DNA from: Penicillus capitatus | Taxonomy: Eukaryota; Plantae; Chlorophyta | NCBI GenBank assembly: GCA_965649825.1 | Contig: OZ287714.1 | Coordinates: 243,527 to 307,526, forward strand | Direction of reading: 5' to 3' | Length of the DNA stretch: 64,000 nt | Shown here: positions 40,763-64,000 of the stretch, in pieces | How positions within the stretch are numbered: position 1 is the first letter of the stretch | Layout: every line of letters begins with the position of its first letter | Position numbers and translations under genes: made by a program | Notes under the pieces: model-generated | Database searches by the model: none | Told to the model about the DNA's origin: nothing | Seen by the model: only the letters and a program-made list of their open reading frames with translations

Positions 40763-42363
40763 TCATGAACCAGTGGCATCCTTCTTATCTGTTCGGTCAT
40801 AAGAAAACCGAAGGCCCAAAAGAAAACGATCGACAGTCTTGTAGGTTCCTGTCAGGATCTTGTTTGTCGAGCTGTAGAGTGATGTGAGAGAATAGATGCA
40901 TCCGCCAAAAATGACCAGCATTAGAAATTGAGCAAGCCATAGGGGCAAAGGTCCTCTCTTCTTCAGATTCTTTGCCTCGATTCTCTTATTCGCCCTGTTG
41001 CTTCGCAATGCTTCTTTCCTCCTCTCGTCTGAAGGTGCAGGTTGGAGTTTGGTAAGTGAAGATGGTGGTGTAGATGACTGTTCTGCGCCACTCGAAAGCT
41101 TTGATGGTTGGGGGATAGGCAGAACTTTAGAGGACTCGCTGGAGTATTTCTTTTTCATTAGATCCAATACAGAATCGGATGGAGGAGATGAAGGCTCACG
41201 AGGTTGCACTTGCGGAAGTTGTGGTTCTTTCCCTTCGACGATTCTAGATGGAATCTCTTGAGATGATTCACTTTTCTTCATGGAGTTGGAAAAAGAGGTT
41301 GGATCTTTTGCCTTGAATGGGAATGTTTGTTGAGGAGCTGGAAATTGTTCTTGAGCTGGACTGCTGGTCTTGTTACTCTCCAAAAAACCTTGCTGTTGTG
41401 AACCATCGGGAGCCGAGAACTTCGGGAGATCGGGAGCCGAGAACTTCGGGAGATCGGGAGCCGAGAACTTCGGGAGATCGGGAGCCGAGAACTTCGGGAG
41501 ATCGGGAGCCGAGAACTTCGGGAGATCGGGAGCCGAGAACTTCGGGAGATCGGGAGCCGAGAACTTCGGGAGATCGGGAGCCGAGAACTTCGGGAGATCG
41601 GGAGCCGAGAACTTCGGGAGATCGGGAGCCGAGAACTTCGGGAGATCGGGAGCCGAGAACTTCGGGAGATCGGGAGCCGAGAACTTCGGGAGATCGGGAG
41701 CCGAGAACTTCGGGAGATCGGGAGCCGAGAACTTGGACATGTCCGGGACGGATGGCTTCGGGAGATCGGGAGCCGAGAACTTTGGGAAAGATGGAAAAGG
41801 AAAGCCGCTATCTTTGCTTGTTCGTGGCATGACTTTCTGCGATTCCGAGATTTCTTCGTCATACTTTTCTTGTCGCTTTTTTACATTTTCCGTCAACAAT
41901 TCCAATCTCGATTTCGTCGCTGGTTCCGAGTCCTCTTTGGATACAGCGTCATCTCTTTGTTTCTCCGTCTCTCCCTGAACAGAAAGCAGTTAGTATTTTT
42001 CAAACAATTGCGTGATACTTGACGCAGCACTCTTTCTCTGGCTGCCCTTAATAACTTCTTTCTTCGCTCTATCGTTGCCGATCTCAGTTCATCTGGAGTT
42101 TGAGTATCTTCCGCGTGCGCAAATGTCCATTCACCTAGCATGTCTGGTGAACTGACCACCAGACTTGCTGCCAAGACCGCTGCCGTCATTCTCGACACGC
42201 CATCCCACGAGACACATATACTGTTCGTTTCTCCTTCTTCACAGCGCGCTCTGCTTGTACAAACAAACTGACGGTCATGAGTCGCACGGTGTCTTCCGAT
42301 CGCACGCTTCGTTGCAAAATAGCGTTTCACGATCACGGTCGACGCCGATTCCATCGTGGGCAT
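40763..42363 (-). CDS. Putative thylakoid protein with an 8-aa KFSAPDLP tandem repeat and a C-terminal transmembrane helix
   Basis: Exon 1 (from 42363) encodes a transit-like N-terminus, a hydrophobic stretch AAVLAASLVVSSP and an AHA|E peptidase-type site. It splices (RVLRQ|GETEKQ) into ORF 40763-41905, which carries ~16 repeats, a Ser/Pro-rich tract and the TM segment PLPLWLAQFLMLVIFGGCIYSL. Confidence 0.7.
41405..41790. repeat. Coding 24-bp minisatellite ATCGGGAGCCGAGAACTTCGGGAG, 13 identical copies plus ~3 degenerate copies
   Basis: Units start at 41405+24n. They are identical through 41716, partial at 41717, divergent at 41741 and near-perfect at 41765. Confidence 0.97.
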
Positions 42364-43362
42364 TGAACGCGTCTGTCACTTCAGATCCGAGTTGGAATTA
42401 ACTCTATTGAAGGTGGTGCGTCTATTCCATCCGATCCTGTATTTATTTATCACATGCACAAACACAAACATCAAACCAAGAGATGGCTCAGAGAGACATG
42501 TGGATCCAAGCGACCGTTCCACAGAAGTGGCAGTTTATAACGCAAGAGAGTCTGTATCACGGCATCGCAACACGACACACTTATCTAGTAGGGACAATCA
42601 CTTAACTCTGCCCATTAGCACAAAAGAGATCACTGATTTTGAACGCAGTTTATAGCAGGAGTGTTTCAGTCGATTTTTAGGGTTAAACTCCAAGCTACGT
42701 CGTCTGAACTTCTTTAAAGAAAGGGATGCTCAACTGGATAATCGCTTGCACTATTCATGTTACCGTTAAAAATACAGAAGAGGCACGAGCTAAAGCCTGA
42801 TTGAAGGCTCTCATGATCCATCGAATAAGGAGTGTGTGGGTTTGTAGGAGCCTTTGTTGGGTGGAACGTCAGCCTTGATCAAGGATCTGGAAACGGCCGG
42901 TCCAAAATTCGATCTGTACGTGACAAGTCTCGTCATAAGAATAGGACAATCGAAGCAATCTCAACGAACACGAAGTCTGTCTTTTGATCTGGAGTGAAGT
43001 CACTAGCAGCAGATTCTAACAACCTCAGAGATCAATGCAAGCTCAACATCTGCTTCGTGTAATGCATCTAATAAGCAGCTGCAGCTAGTTGAAGTCAAGG
43101 TGCAGAGTGCAAGCAGCAAACCTGAGTCTTCTACAGAAGGTTGACACGATTCTCTAGACTGCACAAAGTGGCCAATTACCACAGACGATCGGCTATCGTT
43201 ATCGCGATAAGATCTCGACATTTCCAGGCCACACGCTGCAGTGGCTCTGAAGACTATAAGGACATGACATGTACAGTATTCTCTCAAAAAACCTTTAAAT
43301 TGGTTCTCCCTGCTGAATTTGTCCGATTGGTAAAAGTGCCAAAAATGAAGAACTGGGGAGAT

Positions 43363-44700
43363 TTATTTTTTTACGACTGTTGCTAGGTCGGCCTTCACTG
43401 CAACATTGGTTGCACTCAGATTTGGTTCCTGTGTCACCGGAACTTTAAAATCCAGCTCAACACCCTTTTCAAAGACCAAACAGTGTGTCGAACCCCCAAA
43501 ATGAAACATTCCAATGTCATCTCCCCTCTTAACCACTTGACCTGCCACGACTGTAATTTCGCAGCTCGATACCTCTGCCATTCCCACTGTCACCATGGCA
43601 ATCAAACCAATAGCAGGATTATCTGCACGAATAAAAATAATGCCCCGTGTTGCCACAGATGTAATAAATGGTTGAGATTCATTTGGTGCTGCCGGATCAG
43701 GACTGTCGCTGTAAACACTCTCCGACGGACTTTGAAGATAGAAAGTTCCGTCAACGATCGAAGTTTTCTCAATAACCCCATCCACTGGACTGTGCCAGCA
43801 GTGATAGCTTAAAGCACTCAAATATGCTTGATATACTATACCGCCAGCAAATTGAAGAGCAAGGGAATCATCATTAAGCATATCCCTCAGTGAATACGGC
43901 TGACCCTTCAAGATTATGTCAGCAGACAGCCGCACACCTGTCTTGTACTGCAATGGTGCCGATTCACAAGCATTGACTATTTCTGCTTCACCAACTGGCC
44001 GTTGGCCTTCTCTAAACTTCCTTATGAAGAAGTCATCCCAGCTATTAAAACCGAGATACTTATCGTTCTCATCTGGCACTTCAAAGATTTGTTCGAATGT
44101 CAAATCGGGCTTGTTATCGAATGGCTGCAGTGCCACCTCGACCATCTGCTGTTTGGCAGGATCACTAAACCAAGGAATAGAATGCACAGGTCCAGAATTA
44201 TCACCTTCAGCAAGTACATATCTCGATTTCTCTCCGGCCAAAAAAGCACTCCAGTACTGCAAGACATCCTTGAAGTATCTGTTAAATTTGACATTTGCAA
44301 ACGTGTAGTAACCAGATGATGTTCCCATGGGCCAGTCTAACAGTGCATTGATTGGGAAACCGACCAAACCTTGCGCCTCATTATCATCTGCGTCCACGAT
44401 GAACTCCGGAGCGGTGGTCATAATCGCGTTCAGCAGATCCAAAAATTCCTTCCATGTCTTTACGGCTGGCGCCGAGGTCGGATCTTCTTTGTCATGGTTC
44501 AGGGCTTCGACGAACATGCCTTGCGTCGAAATGTCTAACAGTGGATCGTTGGCGACCATGTTGTATAACATTCGAACAGGAAAGTGATACTCTGACACTT
44601 CAGTGACCGTAGCCCTCTCTTTAAGCTTCGAAATCCATTTCTCTAGTAGCGTTTGATTTTTCAACCAGCTGCCCGGTCGTTTTTTGGAACAGCAAAACAT
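43363..44700 (-). CDS. Phosphatidylserine-decarboxylase-related (PSDC N-domain, PsiD-like) pyruvoyl-dependent decarboxylase, intronless
   Basis: 445-aa single ORF: RPGSWL..LLEKWI, QGMF, GLVGFPINALLDWPMGT, FNSWDDFFIRKFREGQRP, VNACES, KGQPYSL, YQAYLSALSYHCWHSPVDG, GMAEVSSC, GMFHFGG-STHCLVF (self-cleavage/pyruvoyl site). This pattern is characteristic of the fungal/bacterial PsiD-like PSD subfamily. Confidence 0.88.
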   Translation of the reverse strand: MFCCSKKRPGSWLKNQTLLEKWISKLKERATVTEVSEYHFPVRMLYNMVANDPLLDISTQGMFVEALNHDKEDPTSAPAVKTWKEFLDLLNAIMTTAPEFIVDADDNEAQGLVGFPINALLDWPMGTSSGYYTFANVKFNRYFKDVLQYWSAFLAGEKSRYVLAEGDNSGPVHSIPWFSDPAKQQMVEVALQPFDNKPDLTFEQIFEVPDENDKYLGFNSWDDFFIRKFREGQRPVGEAEIVNACESAPLQYKTGVRLSADIILKGQPYSLRDMLNDDSLALQFAGGIVYQAYLSALSYHCWHSPVDGVIEKTSIVDGTFYLQSPSESVYSDSPDPAAPNESQPFITSVATRGIIFIRADNPAIGLIAMVTVGMAEVSSCEITVVAGQVVKRGDDIGMFHFGGSTHCLVFEKGVELDFKVPVTQEPNLSATNVAVKADLATVVKK

Positions 44701-46535
44701 GTCGCGCCAAACGTTTCTCGGAGATTAAGAAAAGCGATGGACTTAAAAACACTCGTCGAGAACAAAAGAGAATTGCGTCGGCGCTCCGACCAGGATGCCT
44801 CGGGAAGCGAAATTTGCACAAAGCATCCATGCCAGACGATTTTTATATTCTGGCCTGATGTGACTGAACCTCCGTCGTCAACAAAGATCCGCGATCGAAA
44901 ATGAAGGATCTGCTTGTTTTGACAACGGCGGTTGACCGCCGACGAAGACGCGTTTTGAAGGACGATTACCATCTTCTATATCCCGAGGCGTATGTTTCTG
45001 ACTAGAACTCGTATGGCGACATGCAAGTGTTAATTCTCTTTATTGGTAAGCAGCGCATCGCAGAGAAGGAGAGAGAAGAGTTGTTCGTAAGATCTAACCT
45101 GTCGAGGCAGTCATCTCACACCTCTGAAGCTTGATATCACATTACTTCAAGGTCATAGCCGCGTTCCGTGGCAGTCACAGGCTCATTCTTCCTCAATTCC
45201 ATTCCCCGGCACTGCCTAGTTGAAAGTGTTGGGACAAAAGGATCCTTGCAGAATGGGAGAATCTGTTGAAACTAACTGACACATCTCTTATTCTGGCATT
45301 CGTGCAATGTATTTTCGTCATTAGAGTCCATTTGCTTTCCGGATGATGATGATCTGTCAACGCAAATTGAGCTATAGAATTCCTTTTATGAAAACGGACT
45401 CTCATCGCATTCGATTCGGAAATGTGCAACGTTCTTTCAAAGAGAGGGTATTGTTCCTTCAGGAAATGGCGATCATTAATTCAAAAACGGATTGCCTTGT
45501 GGGAGCTGTAGATGGTTGGACATCCAGAAGTGTCTCGTGACGCGAACGCGCTTCGACAATAGAAAACTCCGATGAATCAGTTTCAATACCGGATGTTTGT
45601 CGCTTATGAGCATGATGCATATGCAGTCAGTCAGGTGTAGAAATATCCATTGACGCAAGTGTCATTTACTAATATGCTGTAATGGCAGTCAGAATTGCAC
45701 TAGAGTAATTATTGTAGGCGAAGGCACCAACCATCGTTAGAAATCTATTTCACATATGGATCTTTTTGTCCTGTGAAACACTAGGAAACGCCATTTTCAC
45801 AAAAGGGTTGATGCAATAAGTTAGCAATTGTGAGAGACGACAATGCATGGTACGATGTATTTTGTTCTCGCAGAACTATTGTTGCAACCAGTCAGGACAG
45901 GTGGTCCAGTTGAACGATACTGTTCTAGTCCACCTACGACGCGTCAGAACTGCAGCACGAGGACCGTTTTTTTACAAACGAGTGAAACTTTTCCTGTCTG
46001 CGATATATAAATCTACTGTTGAGGACGACTTCTTCCTTGTTACATCTTTCTTCGCCGATGAGAGCATTTACACATATAGATCATAAAGTTGTTGATCCTA
46101 GTGAACTGTGCACAGCGGCCAAATGACATGCAAAGACATCATCGCAGCCAAATTCCGCAACAGTGAGTTTTTATGAGCATCCCTTCGAAGTGCTCGTCAA
46201 CAGTGTTTCTAGAAGTGTGTGTTCGCATAGCTGAGCAGCTTGTATGCTCTGTGCGCACGCACTTTTCACTTGCACGTCAAAGAATTCGTCTTGTGTAGGT
46301 ACTCGATGTCGAATGACAATATCTCGGCGACGGGAAGCCCCGTACGGAACGATGTAATGAGTGCCAACAGCAGTGAAGTTGCTGCTGTCGGCTTAGCATC
46401 TGATAACGTATACCTACAAAGACTAGTGATTGATTCACTAAGTTATGTTTTGTAGGGAAACGGAGTTTAAACAAGAACTCTAGAAAGTATGGCCATAGCC
46501 ATAACACTGTCATGCACCTGAAGGGCAGGATGGAA

Positions 46536-46582
46536 ATGACGGGAAGCATGACGAGATCATGACGTCATGCTCAGATATAAAA
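46536..46582 (+). promoter_or_regulatory. Three ATGACG motifs, the palindrome CATGACGTCATG and TATAAAA: candidate Pol II promoter
   Basis: ATGACG at 46536, 46548 and 46559; a 12-bp perfect palindrome at 46558-46569; TATAAAA at 46576-46582. It lies ~130 bp upstream of the interrupted ORF starting at 46709. Confidence 0.35.
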
Positions 46583-46708
46583 CGGGGGAATGAAGGAAAC
46601 TAACGCTTTGTTTTCAAGAATCGTTTCTCTGTTTCCTACGAACGGACTCACGTACCCGCGAAGCGAATCGCAGCCTTATAATTCCAGGTCTACATAACAA
46701 CACAAAGA

Positions 46709-47530
46709 ATGGAAAGCAATCTAAAGAAAGCAGAAGAATGTTTATGTGCGCAACAAGAAAGAGATCGCGTCGAGATCCAAGGACTACTCTAGCAGATGAA
46801 AAATGTAATGACAGAATCGAAGCCAAACAAAGCAATACCTGAGCGTGGTGACGTTGAGAAAGCATCAGAAGAAACGAAACAACCGAAGAAGATGGACACC
46901 ATTGATCTTTTATCGCCTTCACCTCGCATTACATATAATTTTAACACTGAAACGCCGACCAAACTCGACCTGGCAAGGACTCCCTCGGTCAATTTGCAAA
47001 CAACGCCGATCATTCGTCGGAATACTAATTATGCCTTAAAGCACGCCTTCACTATCTGCCCTTTCTCAGCAACGCCGCGCTTGCCAATGTCTTGGAAAAG
47101 ACCTGCCAGATTGATCCAAATACTCTGTCCCGAGGCGCACGCAAGGAATCAATCTGTTTGCGCTTACGCTGATAAGAAACACCTAAGCTTAATTGATAAA
47201 GATTGGCAATAAAGCCTGAGTCAAACGTCGTCGGAGCACGAGAAGACAGCGAACCTTAAAGAAATAACTTTAGCTCCGCCATTCAAAAATAAAGAAGCTT
47301 TGAAGCGCAAAACGCCCGTAGAAGAGGGTGGTGCGACTCAAGAAACCTGGAATGCACATCCGACACGCAGCAACCCTCGATGTTGCGCCCAACGATGCCA
47401 CCAGTTGCAAAAACTAAGCTTTCAAAAGAAGGCTTGCCTATAATCCTCCAGCAAATTAATAAATCGACTAGAAAAAACGATACGCTACAGACTCAATTAG
47501 TGGGCCTCCTTCAGAACCTACTTACTGTCT
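46709..47530 (+). pseudogene. Decayed ORF (possible transposon gag-like or gene relic) abutting the satellite
   Basis: MESNLKKAEECLCAQQERDRVEIQGLL*(TAG 46790)QMKNVMTESKPNK... continues in frame into ORF 46796-47212. Further protein-like stretches in a shifted frame (HYLPFLSNAALANVLEKTCQIDPNTLSRGARKE...) are broken by stops. Confidence 0.35.
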
Positions 47531-47554
47531 AAAGTCCAACCACAGAAGATACTC

Positions 47555-50500
47555 CTAAAAAGACTTTTGCGCAGTCACGGTGTCCAATGGCTCGTCTGAG
47601 CAAACCTGCATGCTATCTAGGTGCTCCTCAACAACCTTGAGACCTTGGGCAGAGATAGACGTACTCTGGCCGCTCGGTGGTGGTGCGCCGAACGCGACCC
47701 TTGAAAATGGGACGTCATCCTCGACCACCAAGACGGCGGCGAACGCCCCGTCCGAGCGACCCTGCGCGTTGGCACCGTGGTGCCCCACGTCCCCGTGGCG
47801 AGAGAATCCAGCTAAGCCGGCTAGATCGTGGTGATCCGGACCCGCGGCTCGATTACGGTTGGATTTTTCCGAGACCCCTTGCGCACGGCAACGGCGTCCA
47901 ATGTCTCGCGTGAGTGTTCCTGCATGCTAGTTAGGTACATCCCTACGCCCTTGTACACAGAAAGCCGAACTCCGGGGGCTCGGTGGTGGTGCGCCGAACG
48001 CGACCCCGAAAAATGGGACTTCATCCTCGACCACCAAGACGGCGGCGAACGCCCCGTCCGAGCGACCCTGCACGTTGGCACCGTGGTGCCCCACTCCCCG
48101 GTGGCGAGAGAATCCAGCTAAGCCGGCTAGATCGTGGTGATCCGGACCCGCGGCTCGGTTACGGTTGGATTTTTTCGAGACCCCTTGCGCACGGCAACGG
48201 CGACCAATGTCTCGGGTGAGTGTTCCTGCATGCTAGTTAGGTACATCCCTACGCCCTTGTACACAGAAAGCCGAACTCCGGGGGCTCGGTGGTGGTGCGC
48301 CGATCGCGACCCCGAAAAATGGGACTTCATCCTCGACCACCAAGACGGCGGCGAACGCCCCGTCCGAGCGACCCTGCACGTTGGCACCGTGGTGCCACAC
48401 GCCCCCGTGGCGAGAGAATCAAGCGAAGCCGGCTAGATCGTGGTGATCCGGACCCGCGGCTCGGTTACACTTGTGTTTTTCCGAGACCCCTTGCGCACGG
48501 CAACGGCGACCAATGTCTCGCGTGAGTGTTCCTGCATGCTAGTTAGGTACATCCCTACGCCCTTAAGCAGAGATGGCCGCACTCCGGGGGCTCGGCGGTG
48601 GTGCGCCGAACGCGACCCTTGAAAATGGGACGTCATCCTCGACCACCAAGACGGCAGCGAACGCCCCGTCCGAGCGACCCTGCGCGTTGGCACCGTGGTG
48701 CCCCACGCCCCCGTGGCGAGAGAATCCAGCGAAGCCGGCTAGATCGTGGTGATCCGGACCCGCGGCTCGGTTACACTTGTGTTTTTCCGAGACCCCTTGC
48801 GCACGGCAACGGCGACCAATGTCTCGCGTGAGTGTTCCTGCATGCTAGTTAGGTACATCCCTACGCCCTTGTACAAAGAATGCCGCACTCCGGGGGCTCG
48901 GCGGTGGTGCGCCGATCGCGACCCTTGAAAATGGGACTTCATCCTCGACCACCAAGACGGCGGCGAACGCCCCGTCCGAGCGACCCTGCGCGTTGGCACC
49001 GTGGTGCCACACGCCCCCGTGGCGAGAGAATCCAGCGAAGCCGGCTAGATCGTGGTGATCCGGACCCGCGGCTCGGTTACGGTTGGATTTTTTCGAGACC
49101 CCTTGCGCACCCCACCGGCGTCCAATGTCTCGGGTGAGTGTTCCTGCACGCTAGTTAGGTACATCCCCACGCCCTTGTACAAAGAATGCCGCACTCCGGG
49201 GGCTCGGCGGTGGTGCGCCGATCGCGACCCTTGAAAATGGGACTTCATCCTCGACCACCAAGACGGCGGCGAACGCCCCGTCCGAGCGACCCTGCGCGTT
49301 GGCACCGTGGTGCCACACGCCCCCGTGGCGAGAGAATCCAGCGAAGCCGGCTAGATCGTGGTGATCCGGACCCGCGGCTCGGTTACGGTTGGATTTTTTC
49401 GAGACCCCTTGCGCACCCCACCGGCGTCCAATGTCTCGGGTGAGTGTTCCTGCACGCTAGTTAGGTACATCCCCACGCCCTTGTACAAAGAATGCCGCAC
49501 TCCGGGGGCTCGGCGGTGGTGCGCCGAGCGCGACCCTTGAAAATGGGACTTCATCCTCGACCACCAAGACGGCGGCGAACGCCCCGTCCGAGCGACCCTG
49601 CGCGTTGGCACCGTGGTGCCACACGCCCCCGTGGCGAGAGAATCAAGCGAAGCCGGCTAGATCGTGGTGATCCGGACCCGCGGCTCGGTTACACTTGTGT
49701 TTTTTCGAGACCCCTTGCGCACCCCACCGGCGTCCAATGTCTCGGGTGAGTGTTCCTGCACGCTAGTTAGGTACATCCCCACGCCCTTGTACAAAGAATG
49801 CCGCACTCCGGGGGCTCGGCGGTGGTGCGCCGATCGCGACCCTTGAAAATGGGACTTCATCCTCGACCACCAAGACGGCGGCGAACGCCCCGTCCGAGCG
49901 ACCCTGCGCGTTGGCACCGTGGTGCCACACGCCCCCGTGGCGAGAGAATCCAGCGAAGCCGGCTAGATCGTGGTGATCCGGACCCGCGGCTCGGTTACGG
50001 TTGGATTTTTTCGAGACCCCTTGCGCACCCCACCGGCGTCCAATGTCTCGGGTGAGTGTTCCTGCACGCTAGTTAGGTACATCCCCACGCCCTTGTACAA
50101 AGAATGCCGCACTCCGGGGGCTCGGCGGTGGTGCGCCGATCGCGACCCTTGAAAATGGGACTTCATCCTCGACCACCAAGACGGCGGCGAACGCCCCGTC
50201 CGAGCGACACTGCGCGTTGGCACCGTGGTGCCCCACGCCCCCGTGGCGAGAGAATCAAGCGAAGCCGGCTAGATCGTGGTGATCCGGACCCGCGGCTCGG
50301 TTACGGTTGGATTTTTTCGAGACCCCTTGCGCACCCCACCGGCGTCCAATGTCTCGGGTGAGTGTTCCTGCACGCTAGTTAGGTACATCCCCACGCCCTT
50401 GTACAAAGAATGCCGCACTCCGGGGGCTCGGCGGTGGTGCGCCGAACGCGACCCCGAAAAATGGGACTTCATCCTCGACCACCAAGACGGCGGCGAACGC

Positions 50501-53500
50501 CCCGTCCGAGCGACCCTGCGCGTTGGCACCGTGGTGCCACACGCCCCCGTGGCGAGAGAATCAAGCGAAGCCGGCTAGATCGTGGTGATCCGGACCCGCG
50601 GCTCGGTTACGGTTGGATTATTTCGAGACCCCTTGCGCACCCCACCGGCGTCCAATGTCTCGGGTGAGTGTTCCTGCATGCTAGTTAGGTACATCCCTAC
50701 GCCCTTGTACAAAGAATGCCGCACTCCGGGGGCTCGGCGGTGGTGCGCCGATCGCGACCCTTGAAAATGGGACTTCATCCTCGACCACCAAGACGGCGGC
50801 GAACGCCCCGTCCGAGCGACACTGCGCGTTGGCACCGTGGTGCCCCACGCCCCCGTGGCGAGAGAATCCAGCGAAGCCGGCTAGATCGTGGTGATCCGGA
50901 CCCGCGGCTCGGTTACGGTTGGATTTTTTCGAGACCCCTTGCGCACCCCACCGGCGTCCAATGTCTCGGGTGAGTGTTCCTGCACGCTAGTTAGGTACAT
51001 CCCCACGCCCTTGTACAAAGAATGCCGCACTCCGGGGGCTCGGTGGTGGTGCGCCGATCGCGACCCTTGAAAATGGGACTTCATCCTCGACCACCAAGAC
51101 GGCGGCGAACGCCCCGTCCGAGCGACACTGCGCGTTGGCACCGTGGTGCCACACGCCCCCGTGGCGAGAGAATCAAGCGAAGCCGGCTAGATCGTGGTGA
51201 TCCGGACCCGCGGCTCGGTTACGGTTGGATTTTTTCGAGACCCCTTGCGCACCCCACCGGCGTCCAATGTCTCGGGTGAGTGTTCCTGCACGCTAGTTAG
51301 GTACATCCCCACGCCCTTGTACAAAGAATGCCGCACTCCGGGGGCTCGGCGGTGGTGCGCCGAACGCGACCCCGAAAAATGGGACGTCATCCTCGACCAC
51401 CAAGACGGCGGCGAACGCCCCGTCCGAGCGACACTGCGCGTTGGCACCGTGGTGCCACACGCCCCCGTGGCGAGAGAATCCAGCGAAGCCGGCTAGATCG
51501 TGGTGATCCGGACCCGCGGCTCGGTTACGGTTGGATTTTTTCGAGACCCCTTGCGCACCCCACCGGCGTCCAATGTCTCGGGTGAGTGTTCCTGCACGCT
51601 AGTTAGGTACATCCCCACGCCCTTGTACAAAGAATGCCGCACTCCGGGGGCTCGGCGGTGGTGCGCCGAACGCGACCCCGAAAAATGGGACGTCATCCTC
51701 GACCACCAAGACGGCGGCGAACGCCCCGTCCGAGCGACACTGCGCGTTGGCACCGTGGTGCCACACGCCCCCGTGGCGAGAGAATCAAGCGAAGCCGGCT
51801 AGATCGTGGTGATCCGGACCCGCGGCTCGGTTACGGTTGGATTTTTTCGAGACCCCTTGCGCACCCCACCGGCGTCCAATGTCTCGGGTGAGTGTTCCTG
51901 CACGCTAGTTAGGTACATCCCCACGCCCTTGTACAAAGAATGCCGCACTCCGGGGGCTCGGCGGTGGTGCGCCGATCGCGACCCTTGAAAATGGGACTTC
52001 ATCCTCGACCACCAAGACGGCGGCGAACGCCCCGTCCGAGCGACCCTGCGCGTTGGCACCGTGGTGCCACACGCCCCCGTGGCGAGAGAATCAAGCGAAG
52101 CCGGCTAGATCGTGGTGATCCGGACCCGCGGCTCGGTTACACTTGTGTTTTTTCGAGACCCCTTGCGCACCCCACCGGCGTCCAATGTCTCGGGTGAGTG
52201 TTCCTGCACGCTAGTTAGGTACATCCCCACGCCCTTGTACAAAGAATGCCGCACTCCGGGGGCTCGGCGGTGGTGCGCCGATCGCGACCCTTGAAAATGG
52301 GACTTCATCCTCGACCACCAAGACGGCGGCGAACGCCCCGTCCGAGCGACCCTGCGCGTTGGCACCGTGGTGCCACACGCCCCCGTGGCGAGAGAATCAA
52401 GCGAAGCCGGCTAGATCGTGGTGATCCGGACCCGCGGCTCGGTTACGGTTGGATTTTTTCGAGACCCCTTGCGCACCCCACCGGCGTCCAATGTCTCGGG
52501 TGAGTGTTCCTGCACGCTAGTTAGGTACATCCCCACGCCCTTGTACAAAGAATGCCGCACTCCGGGGGCTCGGCGGTGGTGCGCCGAACGCGACCCTTGA
52601 AAATGGGACTTCATCCTCGACCACCAAGACGGCGGCGAACGCCCCGTCCGAGCGACCCTGCACGTTGGCACCGTGGTGCCCCACGCCCCGGTGGCGAGAG
52701 AATCCAGCTAAGCCGGCTAGATCGTGGTGATCCGGACCCGCGGCTCGGTTACGGTTGGATTTTTTCGAGACCCCTTGCGCACCCCACCGGCGTCCAATGT
52801 CTCGGGTGAGTGTTCCTGCATGCTAGTTAGGTACATCCCTACGCCCTTGTACAAAGAATGCCGCACTCCGGGGGCTCGGCGGTGGTGCGCCGATCGCGAC
52901 CCTTGAAAATGGGACTTCATCCTCGACCACCAAGACGGCGGCGAACGCCCCGTCCGAGCGACACTGCGCGTTGGCACCGTGGTGCCCCACGCCCCCGTGG
53001 CGAGAGAATCCAGCGAAGCCGGCTAGATCGTGGTGATCCGGACCCGCGGCTCGGTTACGGTTGGATTTTTTCGAGACCCCTTGCGCACCCCACCGGCGTC
53101 CAATGTCTCGGGTGAGTGTTCCTGCACGCTAGTTAGGTACATCCCCACGCCCTTGTACAAAGAATGCCGCACTCCGGGGGCTCGGCGGTGGTGCGCCGAA
53201 CGCGACCCCGAAAAATGGGACGTCATCCTCGACCACCAAGACGGCGGCGAACGCCCCGTCCGAGCGACCCTGCACGTTGGCACCGTGGTGCCACACGCCC
53301 CCGTGGCGAGAGAATCAAGCGAAGCCGGCTAGATCGTGGTGATCCGGACCCGCGGCTCGGTTACGGTTGGATTTTTTCGAGACCCCTTGCGCACCCCACC
53401 GGCGTCCAATGTCTCGGGTGAGTGTTCCTGCACGCTAGTTAGGTACATCCCCACGCCCTTGTACAAAGAATGCCGCACTCCGGGGGCTCGGCGGTGGTGC

Positions 53501-56500
53501 GCCGAACGCGACCCCGAAAAATGGGACGTCATCCTCGACCACCAAGACGGCGGCGAACGCCCCGTCCGAGCGACCCTGCACGTTGGCACCGTGGTGCCAC
53601 ACGCCCCCGTGGCGAGAGAATCAAGCGAAGCCGGCTAGATCGTGGTGATCCGGACCCGCGGCTCGGTTACGGTTGGATTTTTTCGAGACCCCTTGCGCAC
53701 CCCACCGGCGTCCAATGTCTCGGGTGAGTGTTCCTGCACGCTAGTTAGGTACATCCCCACGCCCTTGTACAAAGAATGCCGCACTCCGGGGGCTCGGTGG
53801 TGGTGCGCCGATCGCGACCCTTGAAAATGGGACTTCATCCTCGACCACCAAGACGGCGGCGAACGCCCCGTCCGAGCGACACTGCGCGTTGGCACCGTGG
53901 TGCCACACGCCCCCGTGGCGAGAGAATCAAGCGAAGCCGGCTAGATCGTGGTGATCCGGACCCGCGGCTCGGTTACACTTGTGTTTTTTCGAGACCCCTT
54001 GCGCACCCCACCGGCGTCCAATGTCTCGGGTGAGTGTTCCTGCATGCTAGTTAGGTACATCCCTACGCCCTTGTACAAAGAATGCCGCACTCCGGGGGCT
54101 CGGCGGTGGTGCGCCGATCGCGACCCTTGAAAATGGGACTTCATCCTCGACCACCAAGACGGCGGCGAACGCCCCGTCCGAGCGACACTGCGCGTTGGCA
54201 CCGTGGTGCCACACGCCCCCGTGGCGAGAGAATCAAGCGAAGCCGGCTAGATCGTGGTGATCCGGACCCGCGGCTCGGTTACGGTTGGATTTTTTCGAGA
54301 CCCCTTGCGCACCCCACCGGCGTCCAATGTCTCGGGTGAGTGTTCCTGCACGCTAGTTAGGTACATCCCCACGCCCTTGTACAAAGAATGCCGCACTCCG
54401 GGGGCTCGGCGGTGGTGCGCCGAACGCGACCCTTGAAAATGGGACTTCATCCTCGACCACCAAGACGGCGGCGAACGCCCCGTCCGAGCGACCCTGCACG
54501 TTGGCACCGTGGTGCCCCACGCCCCGGTGGCGAGAGAATCCAGCTAAGCCGGCTAGATCGTGGTGATCCGGACCCGCGGCTCGGTTACGGTTGGATTTTT
54601 TCGAGACCCCTTGCGCACCCCACCGGCGTCCAATGTCTCGGGTGAGTGTTCCTGCACGCTAGTTAGGTACATCCCCACGCCCTTGTACAAAGAATGCCGC
54701 ACTCCGGGGGCTCGGTGGTGGTGCGCCGATCGCGACCCTTGAAAATGGGACTTCATCCTCGACCACCAAGACGGCGGCGAACGCCCCGTCCGAGCGACCC
54801 TGCGCGTTGGCACCGTGGTGCCACACGCCCCCGTGGCGAGAGAATCAAGCGAAGCCGGCTAGATCGTGGTGATCCGGACCCGCGGCTCGGTTACGGTTGG
54901 ATTTTTTCGAGACCCCTTGCGCACCCCACCGGCGTCCAATGTCTCGGGTGAGTGTTCCTGCACGCTAGTTAGGTACATCCCCACGCCCTTGTACAAAGAA
55001 TGCCGCACTCCGGGGGCTCGGCGGTGGTGCGCCGATCGCGACCCCGAAAAATGGGACTACATCCTCGACCACCAAGACGGCGGCGAACGCCCCGTCCGAG
55101 CGACACTGCGCGTTGGCACCGTGGTGCCACACGCCCCCGTGGCGAGAGAATCAAGCGAAGCCGGCTAGATCGTGGTGATCCGGACCCGCGGCTCGGTTAC
55201 GGTTGGATTTTTCCGAGACCCGTTGCGCACCCCACCGGCGTCCAATGTCTCGGGTGAGTGTTCCTGCATGCTAGTTAGGTACATCCCTACGCCCTTAAGC
55301 AGAGATGGCCGCACTCCGGGGGCTCGGCGGTGGTGCGCCGATCGCGACCCTTGAAAATGGGACTTCATCCTCGACCACCAAGACGGCGGCGAACGCCCCG
55401 TCCGAGCGACCCTGCACGTTGGCACCGTGGTGCCACACGCCCCCGTGGCGAGAGAATCAAGCGAAGCCGGCTAGATCGTGGTGATCCGGACCCGCGGCTC
55501 GGTTACGGTTGGATTTTTCCGAGACCCCTTGCGCACCCCACCGGCGTCCAATGTCTCGGGTGAGTGTTCCTGCATGCTAGTTAGGTACATCCCTACGCCC
55601 TTGGGCAGAGATGGCCGCACTCCGGGGGCTCGGCGGTGGTGCGCCGAACGCGACCCTTGAAAATGGGACTTCATCCTCGACCACCAAGACGGCGGCGAAC
55701 GCCCCGTCCGAGCGACCCTGCACGTTGGCACCGTGGTGCCACACGCCCCCGTGGCGAGAGAATCAAGCGAAGCCGGCTAGATCGTGGTGATCCGGACCCG
55801 CGGCTCGGTTACACTTGTGTTTTTCCGAGACACCTTGCGCACGGCAACGGCGACCAATGTCTCGCGTGAGTGTTCCTGCATGCTAGTTAGGTACATCCCT
55901 ACGCCCTTGTACAAAGAAAGCCGCACTCCGGGGGCTCGGCGGTGGTGCGCCGAACGCGACCCTTGAAAATGGGACTTCATCCTCGACCACCAAGACGGCG
56001 GCGAACGCCCCGTCCGAGCGACCCTGCGCGTTGGCACCGTGGTGCCACACGCCCCCGTGGCGAGAGAATCCAGCGAAGCCGGCTAGATCGTGGTGATCCG
56101 GACCCGCGGCTCGGTTACACTTGTGTTTTTCCGAGACACCTTGCGCACGGCTACGGCGTCCAATGTCTCGGGTGAGTGTTCCTGCACGCTAGTTAGGTAC
56201 ATCCCCACGCTTTTAAGCAGAGATGGCCGCACTCCGGGGGCTCGGCGGTGGCGCGCCGAACGCGACCCCGAAAAATGGGACTACATCCTCGACCACCAAG
56301 ACGGCGGCGAACGCCCCGTCCGAGCGACCCTGCACGTTGGCACCGTGGTGCCCCACGCCCCCGTGGCGAGAGAATCCAGCGAAGCCGGCTAGATCGTGGT
56401 GATCCGGACCCGCGGCTCGGTTACGGTTGGATTTTTCCGAGACCCCTTGCGCACGGCAACGGCGACCAATGTCTCGTGTGAGTGTTCCTGCATGCTAGTT

Positions 56501-59500
56501 AGGTACATCCCTACGCCCTTGGGCAGAGATGGCCGCACTCCGGGGGCTCGGCGGTGGTGCGCCGATCGCGACCCTTGAAAATGGGACTTCATCCTCGACC
56601 ACCAAGACGGCGGCGAACGCCCCGTCCGAGCGACCCTGCGCGTTGGCACCGTGGTGCCACACGCCCCCGTGGCGAGAGAATCCAGCGAAGCCGGCTAGAT
56701 CGTGGTGATCCGGACCCGCGGCTCGGTTACGGTTGGATTTTTTTCGAGACCCCTTGCGCACCCCACCGGCGTCCAATGTCTCGGGTGAGTGTTCCTGCAT
56801 GCTAGTTAGGTACATCCCTACGCCCTTGTACACAGAATGCCGCACTCCGGGGGCTCGGTGGTGGTGCGCCGAACGCGACCCTTGAAAATGGGACTTCATC
56901 CTCGACCACCAAGACGGCGGCGAACGCCCCGTCCGAGCGACCCTGCGCGTTGGCACCGTGGTGCCACACGCCCCCGTGGCGAGAGAATCAAGCGAAGCCG
57001 GCTAGATCGTGGTGATCCGGACCCGCGGCTCGGTTACGGTTGGATTTTTTCGAGACCCCTTGCGCACCCCACCGGCGTCCAATGTCTCGGGTGAGTGTTC
57101 CTGCATGCTAGTTAGGTACATCCCTACGCCCTTAAGCAGAGATGGCCGCACTCCGGGGGCTCGGCGGTGGTGCGCCGATCGCGACCCTTGAAAATGGGAC
57201 TTCATCCTCGACCACCAAGACGGCGGCGAACGCCCCGTCCGAGCGACCCTGCGCGTTGGCACCGTGGTGCCCCACGCCCCCGTGGCGAGAGAATCAAGCG
57301 AAGCCGGCTAGATCGTGGTGATCCGGACCCTCGGCTCGGTTACACTTGTGTTTTTCCGAGACCCCTTGCGCACGGCAACGGCGACCAATGTCTCGCGTGA
57401 GTGTTCCTGCATGCTAGTTAGGTACATCCCTACGCCCTTAAGCAGAGATGGCCACACTCCGGGGGCTCGGCGGTGGTGCGCCGAACGCGACCCTTGAAAC
57501 TGGGACGTCATCCTCGACCACCAAGACGGCAGCGAACGCCCCGTCCGAGCGACCCTGCGCGTTGGCACCGTGGTGCCCCACCCCCCCGTGGCGAGAGAAT
57601 CCAGCGAAGCCGGCTAGATCGTGGTGATCCGGACCCGCGGCTCGGTTACACTTGTGTTTTTCCGAGACCCCTTGCGCACGGCAACGGCGACCAATGTCTC
57701 GCGTGAGTGTTCCTGCATGCTAGTTAGGTACATCCCTACCCCCTTAAGCAGAGATGGCCGCACTCCGGGGGCTCGGCGGTGGTGCGCCGATCGCGACCCT
57801 TGAAAATGGGACTTCATCCTCGACCACCAAGACGGCGGCGAACGCCCCGTCCGAGCGACCCTGCACGTTGGCACCGTGGTGCCCCACGCCCCCGTGGCGA
57901 GAGAATCAAGCGAAGCCGGCTAGATCGTGGTGATCCGGACCCGCGGCTCGGTTACACTTGTGTTTTTCCGAGACCCCTTGCGCACGGCAACGGCGACCAA
58001 TGTCTCGCGTGAGTGTTCCTGCATGCTAGTTAGGTACATCCCTACGCCCTTAAGCAGAGATGGCCGCACTCCGGGGGCTCGGCGGTGGTGCGCCGAACGC
58101 GACCCCGAAAAATGGGACGTCATCCTCGACCACCAAGACGGCGGCGAACGCCCCGTCCGAGCGACCCTGCACGTTGGCACCGTGGTGCCACACGCCCCCG
58201 TGGCGAGAGAATCAAGCGAAGCCGGCTAGATCGTGGTGATCCGGACCCGCGGCTCGGTTACGGTTGGATTTTTTCGAGACCCCTTGCGCACCCCACCGGC
58301 GTCCAATGTCTCGGGTGAGTGTTCCTGCACGCTAGTTAGGTACATCCCCACGCCCTTGTACAAAGAATGCCGCACTCCGGGGGCTCGGCGGTGGTGCGCC
58401 GATCGCGACCCCGAAAAATGGGACTTCATCCTCGACCACCAAGACGGCGGCGAACGCCCCGTCCGAGCGACCCTGCGCGTTGGCACCGTGGTGCCCCACG
58501 CCCCCGTGGCGAGAGAATCCAGCGAAGCCGGCTAGATCGTGGTGATCCGGACCCGCGGCTCGGTTACACTTGTGTTTTTCCGAGACCCCTTGCGCACGGC
58601 AACGGCGTCCAATGTCTCGCGTGAGTGTTCCTGCATGCTAGTTAGGTACATCCCTACGCCCTTAAGCAGAGATGGCCGCACTCCGGGGGCTCGGCGGTGG
58701 TGCGCCGATCGCGACCCTTGAAAATGGGACTTCATCCTCGACCACCAAGACGGCGGCGAACGCCCCGTCCGAGCGACCCTGCGCGTTGGCACCGTGGTGC
58801 CACACGCCCCCGTGGCGAGAGAATCAAGCGAAGCCGGCTAGATCGTGGTGATCCGGACCCGCGGCTCGGTTACGGTTGGATTTTTCCGAGACCCCTTGCG
58901 CACCCCACCGGCGACCAATGTCTCGCGTGAGTGTTCCTGCATGCTAGTTAGGTACATCCCTACGCCCTTAAGCAGAGATGGCCGCACTCCGGGGGCTCGG
59001 CGGTGGTGCGCCGAACGCGACCCTTGAAAATGGGACTTCATCCTCGACCACCAAGACGGCGGCGAACGCCCCGTCCGAGCGACCCTGCACGTTGGCACCG
59101 TGGTGCCACACGCCCCCGTGGCGAGAGAATCAAGCGAAGCCGGCTAGATCGTGGTGATCCGGACCCGCGGCTCGGTTACACTTGTGTTTTTCCGAGACAC
59201 CTTGCGCACGGCAACGGCGACCAATGTCTCGCGTGAGTGTTCCTGCATGCTAGTTAGGTACATCCCTACGCCCTTGTACAAAGAAAGCCGCACTCCGGGG
59301 GCTCGGCGGTGGTGCGCCGAACGCGACCCTTGAAAATGGGACTTCATCCTCGACCACCAAGACGGCGGCGAACGCCCCGTCCGAGCGACCCTGCGCGTTG
59401 GCACCGTGGTGCCCCACGCCCCCGTGGCGAGAGAATCAAGCGAAGCCGGCTAGATCGTGGTGATCCGGACCCGCGGCTCGGTTACACTTGTGTTTTTCCG

Positions 59501-62500
59501 AGACCCCTTGCGCACGGCAACGGCGACCAATGTCTCGCGTGAGTGTTCCTGCATGCTAGTTAGGTACATCCCTACGCCCTTAAGCAGAGATGGCCGCACT
59601 CCGGGGGCTCGGCGGTGGTGCGCCGAACGCGACCCCGAAAAATGGGACGTCATCCTCGACCACCAAGACGGCGGCGAACGCCCCGTCCGAGCGACCCTGC
59701 ACGTTGGCACCGTGGTGCCACACGCCCCCGTGGCGAGAGAATCAAGCGAAGCCGGCTAGATCGTGGTGATCCGGACCCGCGGCTCGGTTACGGTTGGATT
59801 TTTTCGAGACCCCTTGCGCACCCCACCGGCGTCCAATGTCTCGGGTGAGTGTTCCTGCATGCTAGTTAGGTACATCCCTACGCCCTTGTACAAAGAAAGC
59901 CGCACTCCGGGGGCTCGGCGGTGGTGCGCCGAACGCGACCCTTGAAAATGGGACTTCATCCTCGACCACCAAGACGGCGGCGAACGCCCCGTCCGAGCGA
60001 CCCTGCGCGTTGGCACCGTGGTGCCCCACGCCCCCGTGGCGAGAGAATCAAGCGAAGCCGGCTAGATCGTGGTGATCCGGACCCGCGGCTCGGTTACACT
60101 TGTGTTTTTCCGAGACACCTTGCGCACGGCAACGGCGACCAATGTCTCGCGTGAGTGTTCCTGCATGCTAGTTAGGTACATCCCTACGCCCTTGTACAAA
60201 GAAAGCCGCACTCCGGGGGCTCGGCGGTGGTGCGCCGAACGCGACCCTTGAAAATGGGACTTCATCCTCGACCACCAAGACGGCGGCGAACGCCCCGTCC
60301 GAGCGACCCTGCGCGTTGGCACCGTGGTGCCCCACGCCCCCGTGGCGAGAGAATCAAGCGAAGCCGGCTAGATCGTGGTGATCCGGACCCGCGGCTCGGT
60401 TACACTTGTGTTTTTCCGAGACCCCTTGCGCACGGCAACGGCGACCAATGTCTCGCGTGAGTGTTCCTGCATGCTAGTTAGGTACATCCCTACGCCCTTA
60501 AGCAGAGATGGCCGCACTCCGGGGGCTCGGCGGTGGTGCGCCGAACGCGACCCCGAAAAATGGGACGTCATCCTCGACCACCAAGACGGCGGCGAACGCC
60601 CCGTCCGAGCGACCCTGCACGTTGGCACCGTGGTGCCACACGCCCCCGTGGCGAGAGAATCAAGCGAAGCCGGCTAGATCGTGGTGATCCGGACCCGCGG
60701 CTCGGTTACGGTTGGATTTTTTCGAGACCCCTTGCGCACCCCACCGGCGTCCAATGTCTCGGGTGAGTGTTCCTGCATGCTAGTTAGGTACATCCCTACG
60801 CCCTTGTACAAAGAAAGCCGCACTCCGGGGGCTCGGCGGTGGTGCGCCGATCGCGACCCTTGAAAATGGGACTTCATCCTCGACCACCAAGACGGCGGCG
60901 AACGCCCCGTCCGAGCGACCCTGCGCGTTGGCACCGTGGTGCCCCACGCCCCCGTGGCGAGAGAATCCAGCGAAGCCGGCTAGATCGTGGTGATCCGGAC
61001 CCGCGGCTCGGTTACACTTGTGTTTTTCCGAGACACCTTGCGCACGGCAACGGCGACCAATGTCTCGCGTGAGTGTTCCTGCATGCTAGTTAGGTACATC
61101 CCTACGCCCTTGTACAAAGAAAGCCGCACTCCGGGGGCTCGGCGGTGGTGCGCCGAACGCGACCCTTGAAAATGGGACTTCATCCTCGACCACCAAGACG
61201 GCGGCGAACGCCCCGTCCGAGCGACCCTGCGCGTTGGCACCGTGGTGCCACACGCCCCCGTGGCGAGAGAATCAAGAGAAGCCGGCTAGATCGTGGTGAT
61301 CCGGACCCGCGGCTCGGTTACGGTTGTGTTTTTCCGAGACCCCTTGCGCACCCCACCGGCGTCCAATGTCTCGGGTGAGTGTTCCTGTATGCTAGTTAGG
61401 TACATCCCTACGCCCTTGTACAAAGAAAGCCGAACTCCGGGGGCTCGGTGGTGGTGCGCCGATCGCGACCCTTGAAAATGGGACTTCATCCTCGACCACC
61501 AAGACGGCGGCGAACGCCCCGTCCGAGCGACCCTGCGCGTTGGCACCGTGGTGCCACACGCCCCCGTGGCGAGAGAATCAAGCGAAGCCGGCTAGATCGT
61601 GGTGATCCGGACCCGCGGCTCGGTTACACTTGTGTTTTTCCGAGACACCTTGCGCACGGCTACGGCGTCCAATGTCTCGGGTGAGTGTTCCTGCACGCTA
61701 GTTAGGTACATCCCCACGCCCTTGGGCAGAGATGGCCGCACTCTGGGTGCTCGGCGGTGGTGCGCCGAACGCGACCCCGAAAAATGGGACGTCATCCTCG
61801 ACCACCAAGACGGCGGCGAACGCCCCGTCCGAGCGACCCTGCGCGTTGGCACCGTGGTGCCACACGCCCCCGTGGCGAGAGAATCCAGCGAAGCCGGCTA
61901 GATCGTGGTGATCCGGACCCGCGGCTCGGTTACACTTGTGTTTTTCCGAGACACCTTGCGCACGGCTACGGCGTCCAATGTCTCGGGTGAGTGTTCCTGC
62001 ATGCTAGTTAGGTACATCCCTACGCCCTTAAGCAGAGATGGCCGCACTCCGGGGGCTCGGCGGTGGTGCGCCGATCGCGACCCTTGAAAATGGGACTTCA
62101 TCCTCGACCACCAAGACGGCGGCGAACGCCCCGTCCGAGCGACCCTGCGCGTTGGCACCGTGGTGCCCCACGCCCCCGTGGCGAGAGAATCCAGCGAAGC
62201 CGGCTAGATCGTGGTGATCCGGACCCGCGGCTCGGTTACGGTTGGATTTTTCCGAGACCCCTTGCGCACGGCAACGGCGACCAATGTCTCGTGTGAGTGT
62301 TCCTGCATGCTAGTTAGGTACATCCCTACGCCCTTAAGCAGAGATGGCCGCACTCCGGGGGCTCGGCGGTGGTGCGCCGATCGCGACCCTTGAAAATGGG
62401 ACTTCATCCTCGACCACCAAGACGGCGGCGAACGCCCCGTCCGAGCGACCCTGCGCGTTGGCACCGTGGTGCCCCACGCCCCCGTGGCGAGAGAATCCAG

Positions 62501-64000
62501 CGAAGCCGGCTAGATCGTGGTGATCCGGACCCGCGGCTCGGTTACGGTTGGATTTTTCCGAGACACCTTGCGCACGGCTACGGCGTCCAATGTCTCGGGT
62601 GAGTGTTCCTGCATGCTAGTTAGGTACATCCCTACGCCCTTAAGCAGAGATGGCCGCACTCCGGGGGCTCGGCGGTGGTGCGCCGAACGCGACCCTTGAA
62701 ATGGGACTACATCCTCGACCACCAAGACGGCGGCGAACGCCCCGTCCGAGCGACACTGCGCGTTGGCACCGTGGTGCCACACGCCCCCGTGGCGAGAGAA
62801 TCAAGCGAAGCCGGCTAGATCGGGGTGATCCGGACCCGCGGCTCGGTTACGGTTGGATTTTTCCGAGACCCCTTGCGCACCCCACCGGCGTCCAATGTCT
62901 CGGGTGAGTGTTCCTGCACGCTAGTTAGGTACATCCCCACGCCCTTGTACAAAGAATGCTGCACTCCGGGGGCTCGGTGGTGGTGCGCCGATCGCGACCC
63001 TTGAAAATGGGACTTCATCCTCGACCACCAAGACGGCGGCGAACGCCCCGTCCGAGCGACCCTGCACGTTGGCACCGTGGTGCCACACGCCCCCGTGGCG
63101 AGAGAATCAAGCGAAGCCGGCTAGATCGTGGTGATCCGGACCCGCGGCTCGGTTACGGTTGGATTTTTCCGAGACCCCTTGCGCACCCCACCGGCGTCCA
63201 ATGTCTCGGGTGAGTGTTCCTGCATGCTAGTTAGGTACATCCCCACGCCCTTGGGCAGAGATGGCCGCACTCCGGGGGCTCGGCGGTGGTGCGCCGAACG
63301 CGACCCTTGAAAATGGGACTTCATCCTCGACCACCAAGACGGCGGCGAACGCCCCGTCCGAGCGACCCTGCACGTTGGCACCGTGGTGCCACACGCCCCC
63401 GTGGCGAGAGAATCAAGCGAAGCCGGCTAGATCGTGGTGATCCGGACCCGCGGCTCGGTTACACTTGTGTTTTTCCGAGACACCTTGCGCACCCCACCGG
63501 CGTCCAATGTCTCGGGTGAGTGTTCCTGCATGCTAGTTAGGTACATCCCTACGCCCTTGGGCAGAGATGGCCGCACTCCGGGGGCTCGGTGGTGGTGCGC
63601 CGAACGCGACCCTTGAAAATGGGACTTCATCCTCGACCACCAAGACGGCGGCGAACGCCCCGTCCGAGCGACCCTGCGCGTTGGCACCGTGGTGCCACAC
63701 GCCCCCGTGGCGAGAGAATCAAGCGAAGCCGGCTAGATCGTGGTGATCCGGACCCGCGGCTCGGTTACACTTGTGTTTTTCCGAGACACCTTGCGCACGG
63801 CTACGGCGTCCAATGTCTCGGGTGAGTGTTCCTGCACGCTAGTTAGGTACATCCCCACGCCCTTGGGCAGAGATGGCCGCACTCTGGGTGCTCGGCGGTG
63901 GTGCGCCGAACGCGACCCCGAAAAATGGGACGTCATCCTCGACCACCAAGACGGCGGCGAACGCCCCGTCCGAGCGACCCTGCGCGTTGGCACCGTGGTG
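47555..64000. repeat. 306-bp GC-rich tandem satellite array (~53 full monomers, continues past window end); candidate centromeric or subtelomeric satellite
   Basis: CTAGATCGTGGTGATCCGG recurs at 47821+306n up to 56695, shifts +1 at 57002 and shifts back at 62815. A hand count of one monomer gives 196/306 GC (~64%). The first unit (47555-47680) is degenerate. Confidence 0.98.

Follow-up and report, generated by a model that had tools for sequence, protein, structure and literature searches.

Does a GC-rich satellite that stops within 3 kb of an intact gene mark a centromere or a chromosome end, or is it a satellite block with no such role? The question is raised by a 64,000-nucleotide stretch of the Penicillus capitatus genome (positions 243,527 to 307,526 of contig OZ287714.1, GenBank assembly GCA_965649825.1; "the window" throughout), which ends in a tandem array of 306-bp units that the initial annotation had put forward as a candidate centromere. 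Our data show that this array is a genuine new species-specific, non-coding satellite family of a green alga, located at a rearrangement-prone site. A centromeric identity is neither supported nor refuted by these data, and we consider it unlikely.

A homogenised 306-bp satellite array

We characterized the array by Tandem Repeats Finder, monomer BLAST, base composition, and alignment to a consensus. Tandem Repeats Finder detected a single large array at 47672-64000 (plus strand; period 306 bp, 53.4 copies, 96% matches, 0% indels), made up of 53 full monomers and a partial one in a single orientation. The array is cut by the end of the window at position 64000, making its 16.3 kb a minimum size. 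BLAST of one monomer against the window returned 54 consecutive matches, all in the same orientation, with unit lengths of 305-307 bp. By this search nothing is inserted within 47672-64000, as the initial annotation had claimed for transposable elements, and the sole irregularity is a run of 24 diverged bases at 57440-57463. No dispersed copies of the unit were found in the remaining 47.5 kb of the window.

The composition of the array also sets it apart. GC content per 2-kb bin is 0.636-0.644 from position 48001 on and 0.448-0.499 in all earlier bins (64% overall in the array versus 47% in the flank), and the flank has a CpG observed/expected ratio of 0.89, compared with 1.17 for the array, whose 306-bp unit contains 36 CpG. 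These values, together with a mean pairwise monomer identity of 95.2% (range 90.5-100%), bear out the earlier description of highly similar head-to-tail monomers, CpG-dense and at about 64% GC, beside a genic zone of lower GC. The nearest intact gene, encoding a bacterial-type phosphatidylserine decarboxylase (PSD; 445 amino acids, Pfam PSDC and PS_Dcarbxylase) at 43363-44700 on the minus strand, lies 2,972 bp from the array, in line with the 2.9 kb first given. The start of the array needed correction: the position originally assigned, 47555, is about 117 bp ahead of the first full monomer, but it does fall near a decayed partial monomer at 47567-47640 (plus strand). By local alignment this fragment keeps the register of the array and matches positions 209-283 of the consensus (score 44 versus 17.5 +/- 2.1 for shuffles; identity 56/76), with a GC content of 0.53 compared with 0.59 for the matching consensus segment. 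It is the old array edge.

Monomer identity declines with distance, from 96.2% at a lag of one unit to 94.4% at a lag of 24, and monomer identity by lag shows no higher-order period across the whole array. A table of variant sites divides the array into a distinct edge (monomers m1-m4), a stretch that is mostly one subtype (m5-m24), and a mixed distal part. Monomers m5-m24 (48895-55014, plus strand) form the most uniform stretch and have one block of linked variants in common, a sign of local expansion. Further along, at 58994-61135 (plus strand), lies a local three-monomer higher-order repeat in which m38, m41, and m44 are alike, as are m39 and m42, and m40 and m43; maximum identity at lag 3 reaches 100%. 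Transitions at CpG are not clearly over-represented among the variants (7 alleles at 72 CpG positions versus 8 at 123 other C/G positions), and therefore no methyl-CpG decay is visible among them.

The unit encodes neither protein nor a known structured RNA

We considered whether the units could be a repeated protein-coding exon or small RNA genes in tandem, of a type such as 5S, spliced-leader, or snRNA. In favour of such readings, 306 is a multiple of three (3 x 102) and a 45-nt core of the monomer is invariant in 52-54 copies. Against a coding exon, all six frames of the consensus are interrupted by one or more stops in each unit, and nowhere in the 16.3 kb does a frame stay open for more than 168 codons; because every consensus frame is interrupted in this way, we take the unit to be non-coding and reject a coding repeat despite the divisible period. 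Against RNA genes, cmscan with Rfam gave no match at the gathering score over the whole window and none at E<=10 over 47400-49000, ARAGORN found no tRNA, and the unit folded as single-stranded DNA no better than shuffles (z = +0.99), giving no excess of hairpins or dyads; we rejected this reading as well. Together these two possibilities are very improbable. We also found no internal half-repeat of 153 bp within the unit. The array has the properties that define satellite DNA: it is tandem, it is homogenised, and it encodes neither protein nor known structured RNA.

Further copies of the 306-bp family

Searching exhaustively with HMMER, we used a 153-aa open reading frame (ORF) of the array as query and recovered five related ORFs. 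Four are 72-87% identical to the query and the fifth is 48% identical. Each lies on an additional ENA contig of its own (2.8, 2.9, 4.5, 36, and 295 kb), the 295-kb contig carrying the 48%-identical ORF. The family thus extends beyond the window contig, though the five contigs do not prove separate chromosomal loci. Uniqueness of the array, which the initial annotation had named as an argument against a centromere, is thus not what we observed. Other searches were less informative. A six-frame protein search with the consensus gave no match but was unreliable, its candidate list being saturated; exact look-ups found neither the 153-aa ORF nor ten 67-aa array ORFs on record; and scans of JGI metagenomes gave no match to a 32-mer and only two chance matches to a 22-mer.

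A second assembly contains a shorter block with a strand switch

The PSD protein and two others from the window, an mTERF protein and an 887-aa protein, are encoded exactly on contig ctg340592 (6,932,391 bp) of a second assembly, ENA ERZ25074695, with the PSD gene at 213,766-215,103. The flank of this locus (L001) is 99.4-99.6% identical to that of the window, so it represents another haplotype or assembly of the window species. Its satellite block is only ~5.5 kb long and lies ~205-210 kb from the contig end (~3% of the 6.93-Mb contig). After four units, at the equivalent of window position 48873, the block switches strand at a blunt junction joining unit position 285 to 32 (L001 position 5830, about position 209,596 of the contig record); beyond it come 14 units in the opposite orientation and then unique DNA (GC 0.44-0.47) with called ORFs. 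Both arms begin at unit position 1-13 beside their own unique flank. The far flank contains a weak in-register relic of the unit that is not significant alone. Near and far flanks of the block have nothing in common beyond monomers, with no common spacer, and the far flank shows no homology to the four loci from relatives that we compared (L004-L007).

We rejected the possibility that the strand switch stems from a fold-back read artefact, because the two arms are only ~95% alike, as any two units are. The two assemblies nonetheless disagree, with at least 53 direct units in the window versus four before the strand switch in ctg340592; the disagreement could be due to collapse, misjoin, or true structural heterozygosity. 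Where the arrays can be paired, m1 and m2 are 99.7% and 98.0% identical between them, and pairing is lost at the third unit (m3 in the window). We conclude that local unequal exchange or gene conversion drives the evolution of the array, because neighbouring units are slightly more similar than distant ones, blocks of a single subtype and a three-unit higher-order repeat are present, the two haplotypes or assemblies diverge fast inside the array, and the edge unit is decayed.

A sister species carries an unrelated satellite at the same gene

In a sister species (ENA ERZ26696514), two haplotype contigs are about 88% identical to window positions 22.6-42.4 kb. On ctg303836 (4.08 Mb) the equivalent of this segment lies at 2.17-2.19 Mb, and on ctg303070, a 271-kb haplotig, it (L005) ends 8.7 kb before the contig end. 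The sister PSD orthologue (P0121, 93% identical) is located apart from that segment, at 11.2 kb of ctg303836. Comparison of L004, L005, and L006 by blastn and tblastx places a synteny breakpoint at 42400-42430 of the window: the block to its left is at 2.19 Mb of ctg303836, and the PSD block to its right is at 9-12.3 kb of the same contig. Only window positions 42,430-45,550 move with the PSD gene.

Upstream of the sister PSD orthologue, at positions 1-4653 of the sister locus L006, we found a different satellite, with a 329-bp unit (14 copies, 95% matches, 62% GC, CpG observed/expected 1.08). The edge of this array lies 5.3 kb from the PSD gene, whose upstream side faces the satellite in the window species and the sister species alike. 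L006 starts 1.2 kb inside ctg303836 and is satellite from its first position, so the satellite probably extends to the contig start. The 306-bp and 329-bp units have no detectable homology (score 14.5 versus 13.9 +/- 2.1 for shuffles). They do have in common an A-rich patch, GAAAATG.GA.T.CATC, with 14 of 17 bases matching between consensus positions 33-49 of the 306-bp unit (for example window 48009-48025) and L006 64-80; a match of this kind is within chance (~0.6 expected). A satellite of similar size and GC thus faces the PSD gene in both species, but the two units are unrelated and the wider neighbourhood is rearranged.

The 329-bp satellite is present at many sites. A 102-aa ORF of its unit belongs to a cluster of 50 sequences, and the 15 that are listed lie on at least nine contigs, of nine different lengths from 64 kb to 4.08 Mb, including the 271-kb haplotig. 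Judging from that haplotig, the 4.08-Mb contig probably carries a second 329-bp array, some 2.2 Mb from the first. In a third and more distantly related genome (L007; PSD 77% identical), no satellite lies within 10 kb.

The DNA beside the sister array has features of its own. Its spacer between satellite and PSD gene (L006 4653-10000) contains broken-frame fragments resembling MnmE GTPase and HSP90. A second repeated element is marked by a 165-aa ORF at L006 5003-5500, with cluster members on contigs of 4.08 Mb, 757 kb, 445 kb, and 88 kb.

A dispersed block, a centromere, or a chromosome end

With an unrelated 329-bp satellite on at least nine sister contigs and ORFs of the 306-bp family on five contigs, the 306-bp satellite is therefore a family of fast turnover that probably occupies multiple loci, here near a synteny breakpoint. 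More broadly, our data show, in part or in full, that this lineage has a class of GC-rich satellites of ~300 bp, found at several loci and exchanged for unrelated sequence from one sister species to the other, with positions at or close to rearrangement breakpoints. We tentatively read the array as a dispersed or interstitial satellite block without a demonstrated landmark role, a reading to which we give slightly less than an even chance. The block at this locus would then be interstitial, with unique DNA on both sides and a strand switch inside it. The simplest explanation for its high GC and undepleted CpG would be GC-biased gene conversion in the course of constant homogenisation, and it would most likely form a small heterochromatic island. 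Several points weigh against this reading. Occupation of multiple loci is directly shown only for the sister satellite, and the five additional 306-bp contigs are short (2.8-36 kb) except for the one of 295 kb, whose ORF is just 48% identical; these contigs may come from another species or be fragments of this one locus that were left unplaced. For the interstitial picture the source is one contig of a metagenome assembler, which is at odds with the window and could be a collapse or misjoin. Finally, we infer GC-biased conversion and heterochromatin rather than observe them, and the monomer variants have no clear methyl-CpG decay.

Subtelomere-type and plain dispersed satellites are both at least as likely as a centromere. 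If the array, or a larger block containing it, were a satellite-type regional centromere, it would bear CENH3 nucleosomes, occur once per chromosome, and have had its repeat swapped between the sister species while keeping its position. We regard this as improbable. A homogenised array of units about two nucleosomes long, with a local higher-order repeat, would suit a centromere, as would the block of the second assembly, which changes strand internally and is bounded by unique DNA on either side. So would the unrelated satellite that occupies the orthologous site beside PSD and is comparable in size and GC, its presence on at least nine sister contigs, and a breakpoint of the whole-arm rearrangement type adjoining the array. 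However, the centromeres so far identified in chlorophytes span tens to hundreds of kb of transposon-rich sequence, as validated in Chlorella by CENH3 chromatin immunoprecipitation (PMC11005252), and none is a GC-rich satellite (PMC11005252, PMC12633428). They consist of Zepp/L1 clusters of long interspersed nuclear elements (LINEs) in Chlamydomonas and Coccomyxa, Copia elements in Chromochloris, and mixed transposons in Chlorella (PMC11005252), while short AT-rich regions are unconfirmed candidates in Auxenochlorella (PMC12633428). By comparison, the tandem arrays typical of green-algal subtelomeres are species-specific, mutually unrelated, and accompanied by a conserved spacer (PMC8287924). 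The prior is therefore not in favour of a GC-rich satellite centromere. The locus itself also fits poorly: we found no LINE or long terminal repeat cluster, the array lacking insertions and the flanking ORFs that were scanned lacking reverse transcriptase and integrase domains, so that no transposons flank the array. The surroundings are gene-dense, with an intact gene 2.9 kb away, rather than gene-poor and repeat-rich as expected around a satellite centromere. The block is only ~5.5 kb in the second assembly, near one end of its contig, and there is no excess of dyad symmetry. In addition, the sister 4.08-Mb contig starts in one array and probably has another 2.2 Mb away, an indirect argument against one array per chromosome.

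A chromosome-end origin would make the array a counterpart of Sultan in Chlamydomonas or Subrel in Coccomyxa, species-specific and common to chromosome ends, with the head-to-head picture in ctg340592 reflecting a false join or the relic of an end fusion; in this specific form we think it quite unlikely. Such mutually unrelated subtelomeric arrays recur among green algae (PMC8287924), and both the 329-bp unit (at least nine contigs) and the 306-bp unit (five further contigs) resemble them as species-specific repeats found at more than one place. Sister contig ctg303836 starts within the 329-bp array, at 5.3 kb from the PSD gene; haplotig ctg303070, which carries the window's left block and ends 8.7 kb past L005, has the 329-bp satellite somewhere; and the array of the window species is ~0.2 Mb from a contig end. 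Both arms in ctg340592 run away from unique flank and start near unit position 1-13, as head-to-head joined ends would, and a small terminal PSD block has moved between array-adjacent sites. Telomeric sequence is the difficulty. We detected no telomere-type repeats in the window or in L001-L008, a search that excluded the distal end of the window array and the first 1,214 bp of ctg303836; this lack also agrees with a centromere, and the loci without such repeats include both satellite-bearing ones, L001 and L006. At the strand switch the two arms meet bluntly, and no telomere tract separates them. A conserved proximal spacer of the Sultan/Subrel type is likewise missing, near and far flanks being alike only in monomers, and unique DNA with called ORFs continues past the block in the 6.93-Mb contig, ~205 kb from the contig end. 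Adjacency to a telomere, another finding that the initial annotation held would speak against a centromere, is thus not visible here, with unique DNA on the far side in the second assembly.

These readings differ in what they would mean. Should the array turn out to be centromeric, which we doubt, it would be the first satellite-based chlorophyte centromere described, unusually rich in GC and CpG and spanning tens of kb or less. The 329-bp array would then be its sister counterpart, with complete repeat replacement between species still ~88% identical in genes. Such centromeres would add a satellite type to those of green algae, so far only transposon clusters or candidate short AT-rich regions, and would offer a compact sister-species pair for studying centromere repeat replacement. 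If the array is subtelomeric, the pattern of species-specific end repeats extends to another algal lineage. Under either reading, the locus cleanly illustrates how a satellite block can coincide with a synteny breakpoint and how two assemblies of the same species can disagree inside a repeat.

Neighbouring genes and flank

The flank of the array contains ordinary eukaryotic nuclear genes, encoding a midasin-like AAA_5 protein, mTERF, enoyl-CoA hydratase, 3-hydroxyacyl-CoA dehydrogenase, TGD1/MlaE (a plastid lipid permease), and PSD. All named TGD1 homologues are from Viridiplantae, mostly green algae, with the best from Bryopsis sp. KO-2023 (73%), which identifies the host as a chlorophyte. 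The 2.9-kb spacer between PSD gene and array (44701-47566) has no ORF longer than 138 aa, and blastn of L006 showed that only 44701-45549 is conserved in the sister species.

For PSD we found three close homologues, at 93% (the sister orthologue), 77%, and 76% identity, and the best named matches are bacterial: Amorphus (64-65%), Symploca (63%), and Endozoicomonas (60%). The neighbours of the gene differ among all three algal genomes compared. From these sequence matches, horizontal transfer is a possible origin of the gene. A second PSD copy is present in the sample of the sister species (L008; ERZ26696514 ctg279314, 28 kb, 192x), 76% identical to the window gene and at the coverage of the main genome; because of this coverage, PSD was probably duplicated in the sister species lineage.

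Two further features lie in the flank. At 41405-41787, inside a 380-aa ORF (40763-41905, minus strand), is a 24-bp tandem repeat of 16 copies with 93% identity; the repeat is also present in the sister species, and its interval is ~155 bp shorter in the second assembly of the window species. The midasin-like AAA_5 gene (11095-18616, minus strand) consists of two long ORFs, of 1641 and 887 aa, that overlap by 68 bp in different frames, so either a frameshift or a short intron must lie between them. Uninterrupted ORFs are long throughout the window, which suggests that the genome is poor in introns.

Comparison with known satellites and centromeres

Chlorophyte centromeres come from the same broad group of organisms as the 306-bp array, and both turn over rapidly between relatives. 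The known centromeres, however, are transposon-based or AT-rich and non-repetitive, whereas the array is transposon-free, GC-rich, and tandem. In its anatomy the array resembles Arabidopsis CEN180 and human alpha satellite, having homogenised head-to-tail units, local higher-order repeats, strand switches, rapid replacement, and rearrangement breakpoints in common with them. Those satellites form CENH3-bearing arrays of hundreds of kb to Mb, usually AT-rich and present once per chromosome; unlike them, the 306-bp block may be as small as 5.5 kb and has a gene 2.9 kb away.

We also compared the array with Sultan of Chlamydomonas reinhardtii and Subrel-I of Coccomyxa subellipsoidea. Unlike in these two systems, we saw no telomere tract or common spacer here, and in one assembly unique DNA follows the block. 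At 306 bp the unit differs in length from those of Sultan (about 850 bp) and Subrel-I (166 bp), and relative to its own genome the 306-bp satellite is GC-rich where Sultan is GC-poor (PMC8287924). In other respects the three are alike: each is species-specific and found at several loci, each forms arrays of a few kb to tens of kb that border genes, and in each the units are closer within an array than between arrays (PMC8287924).

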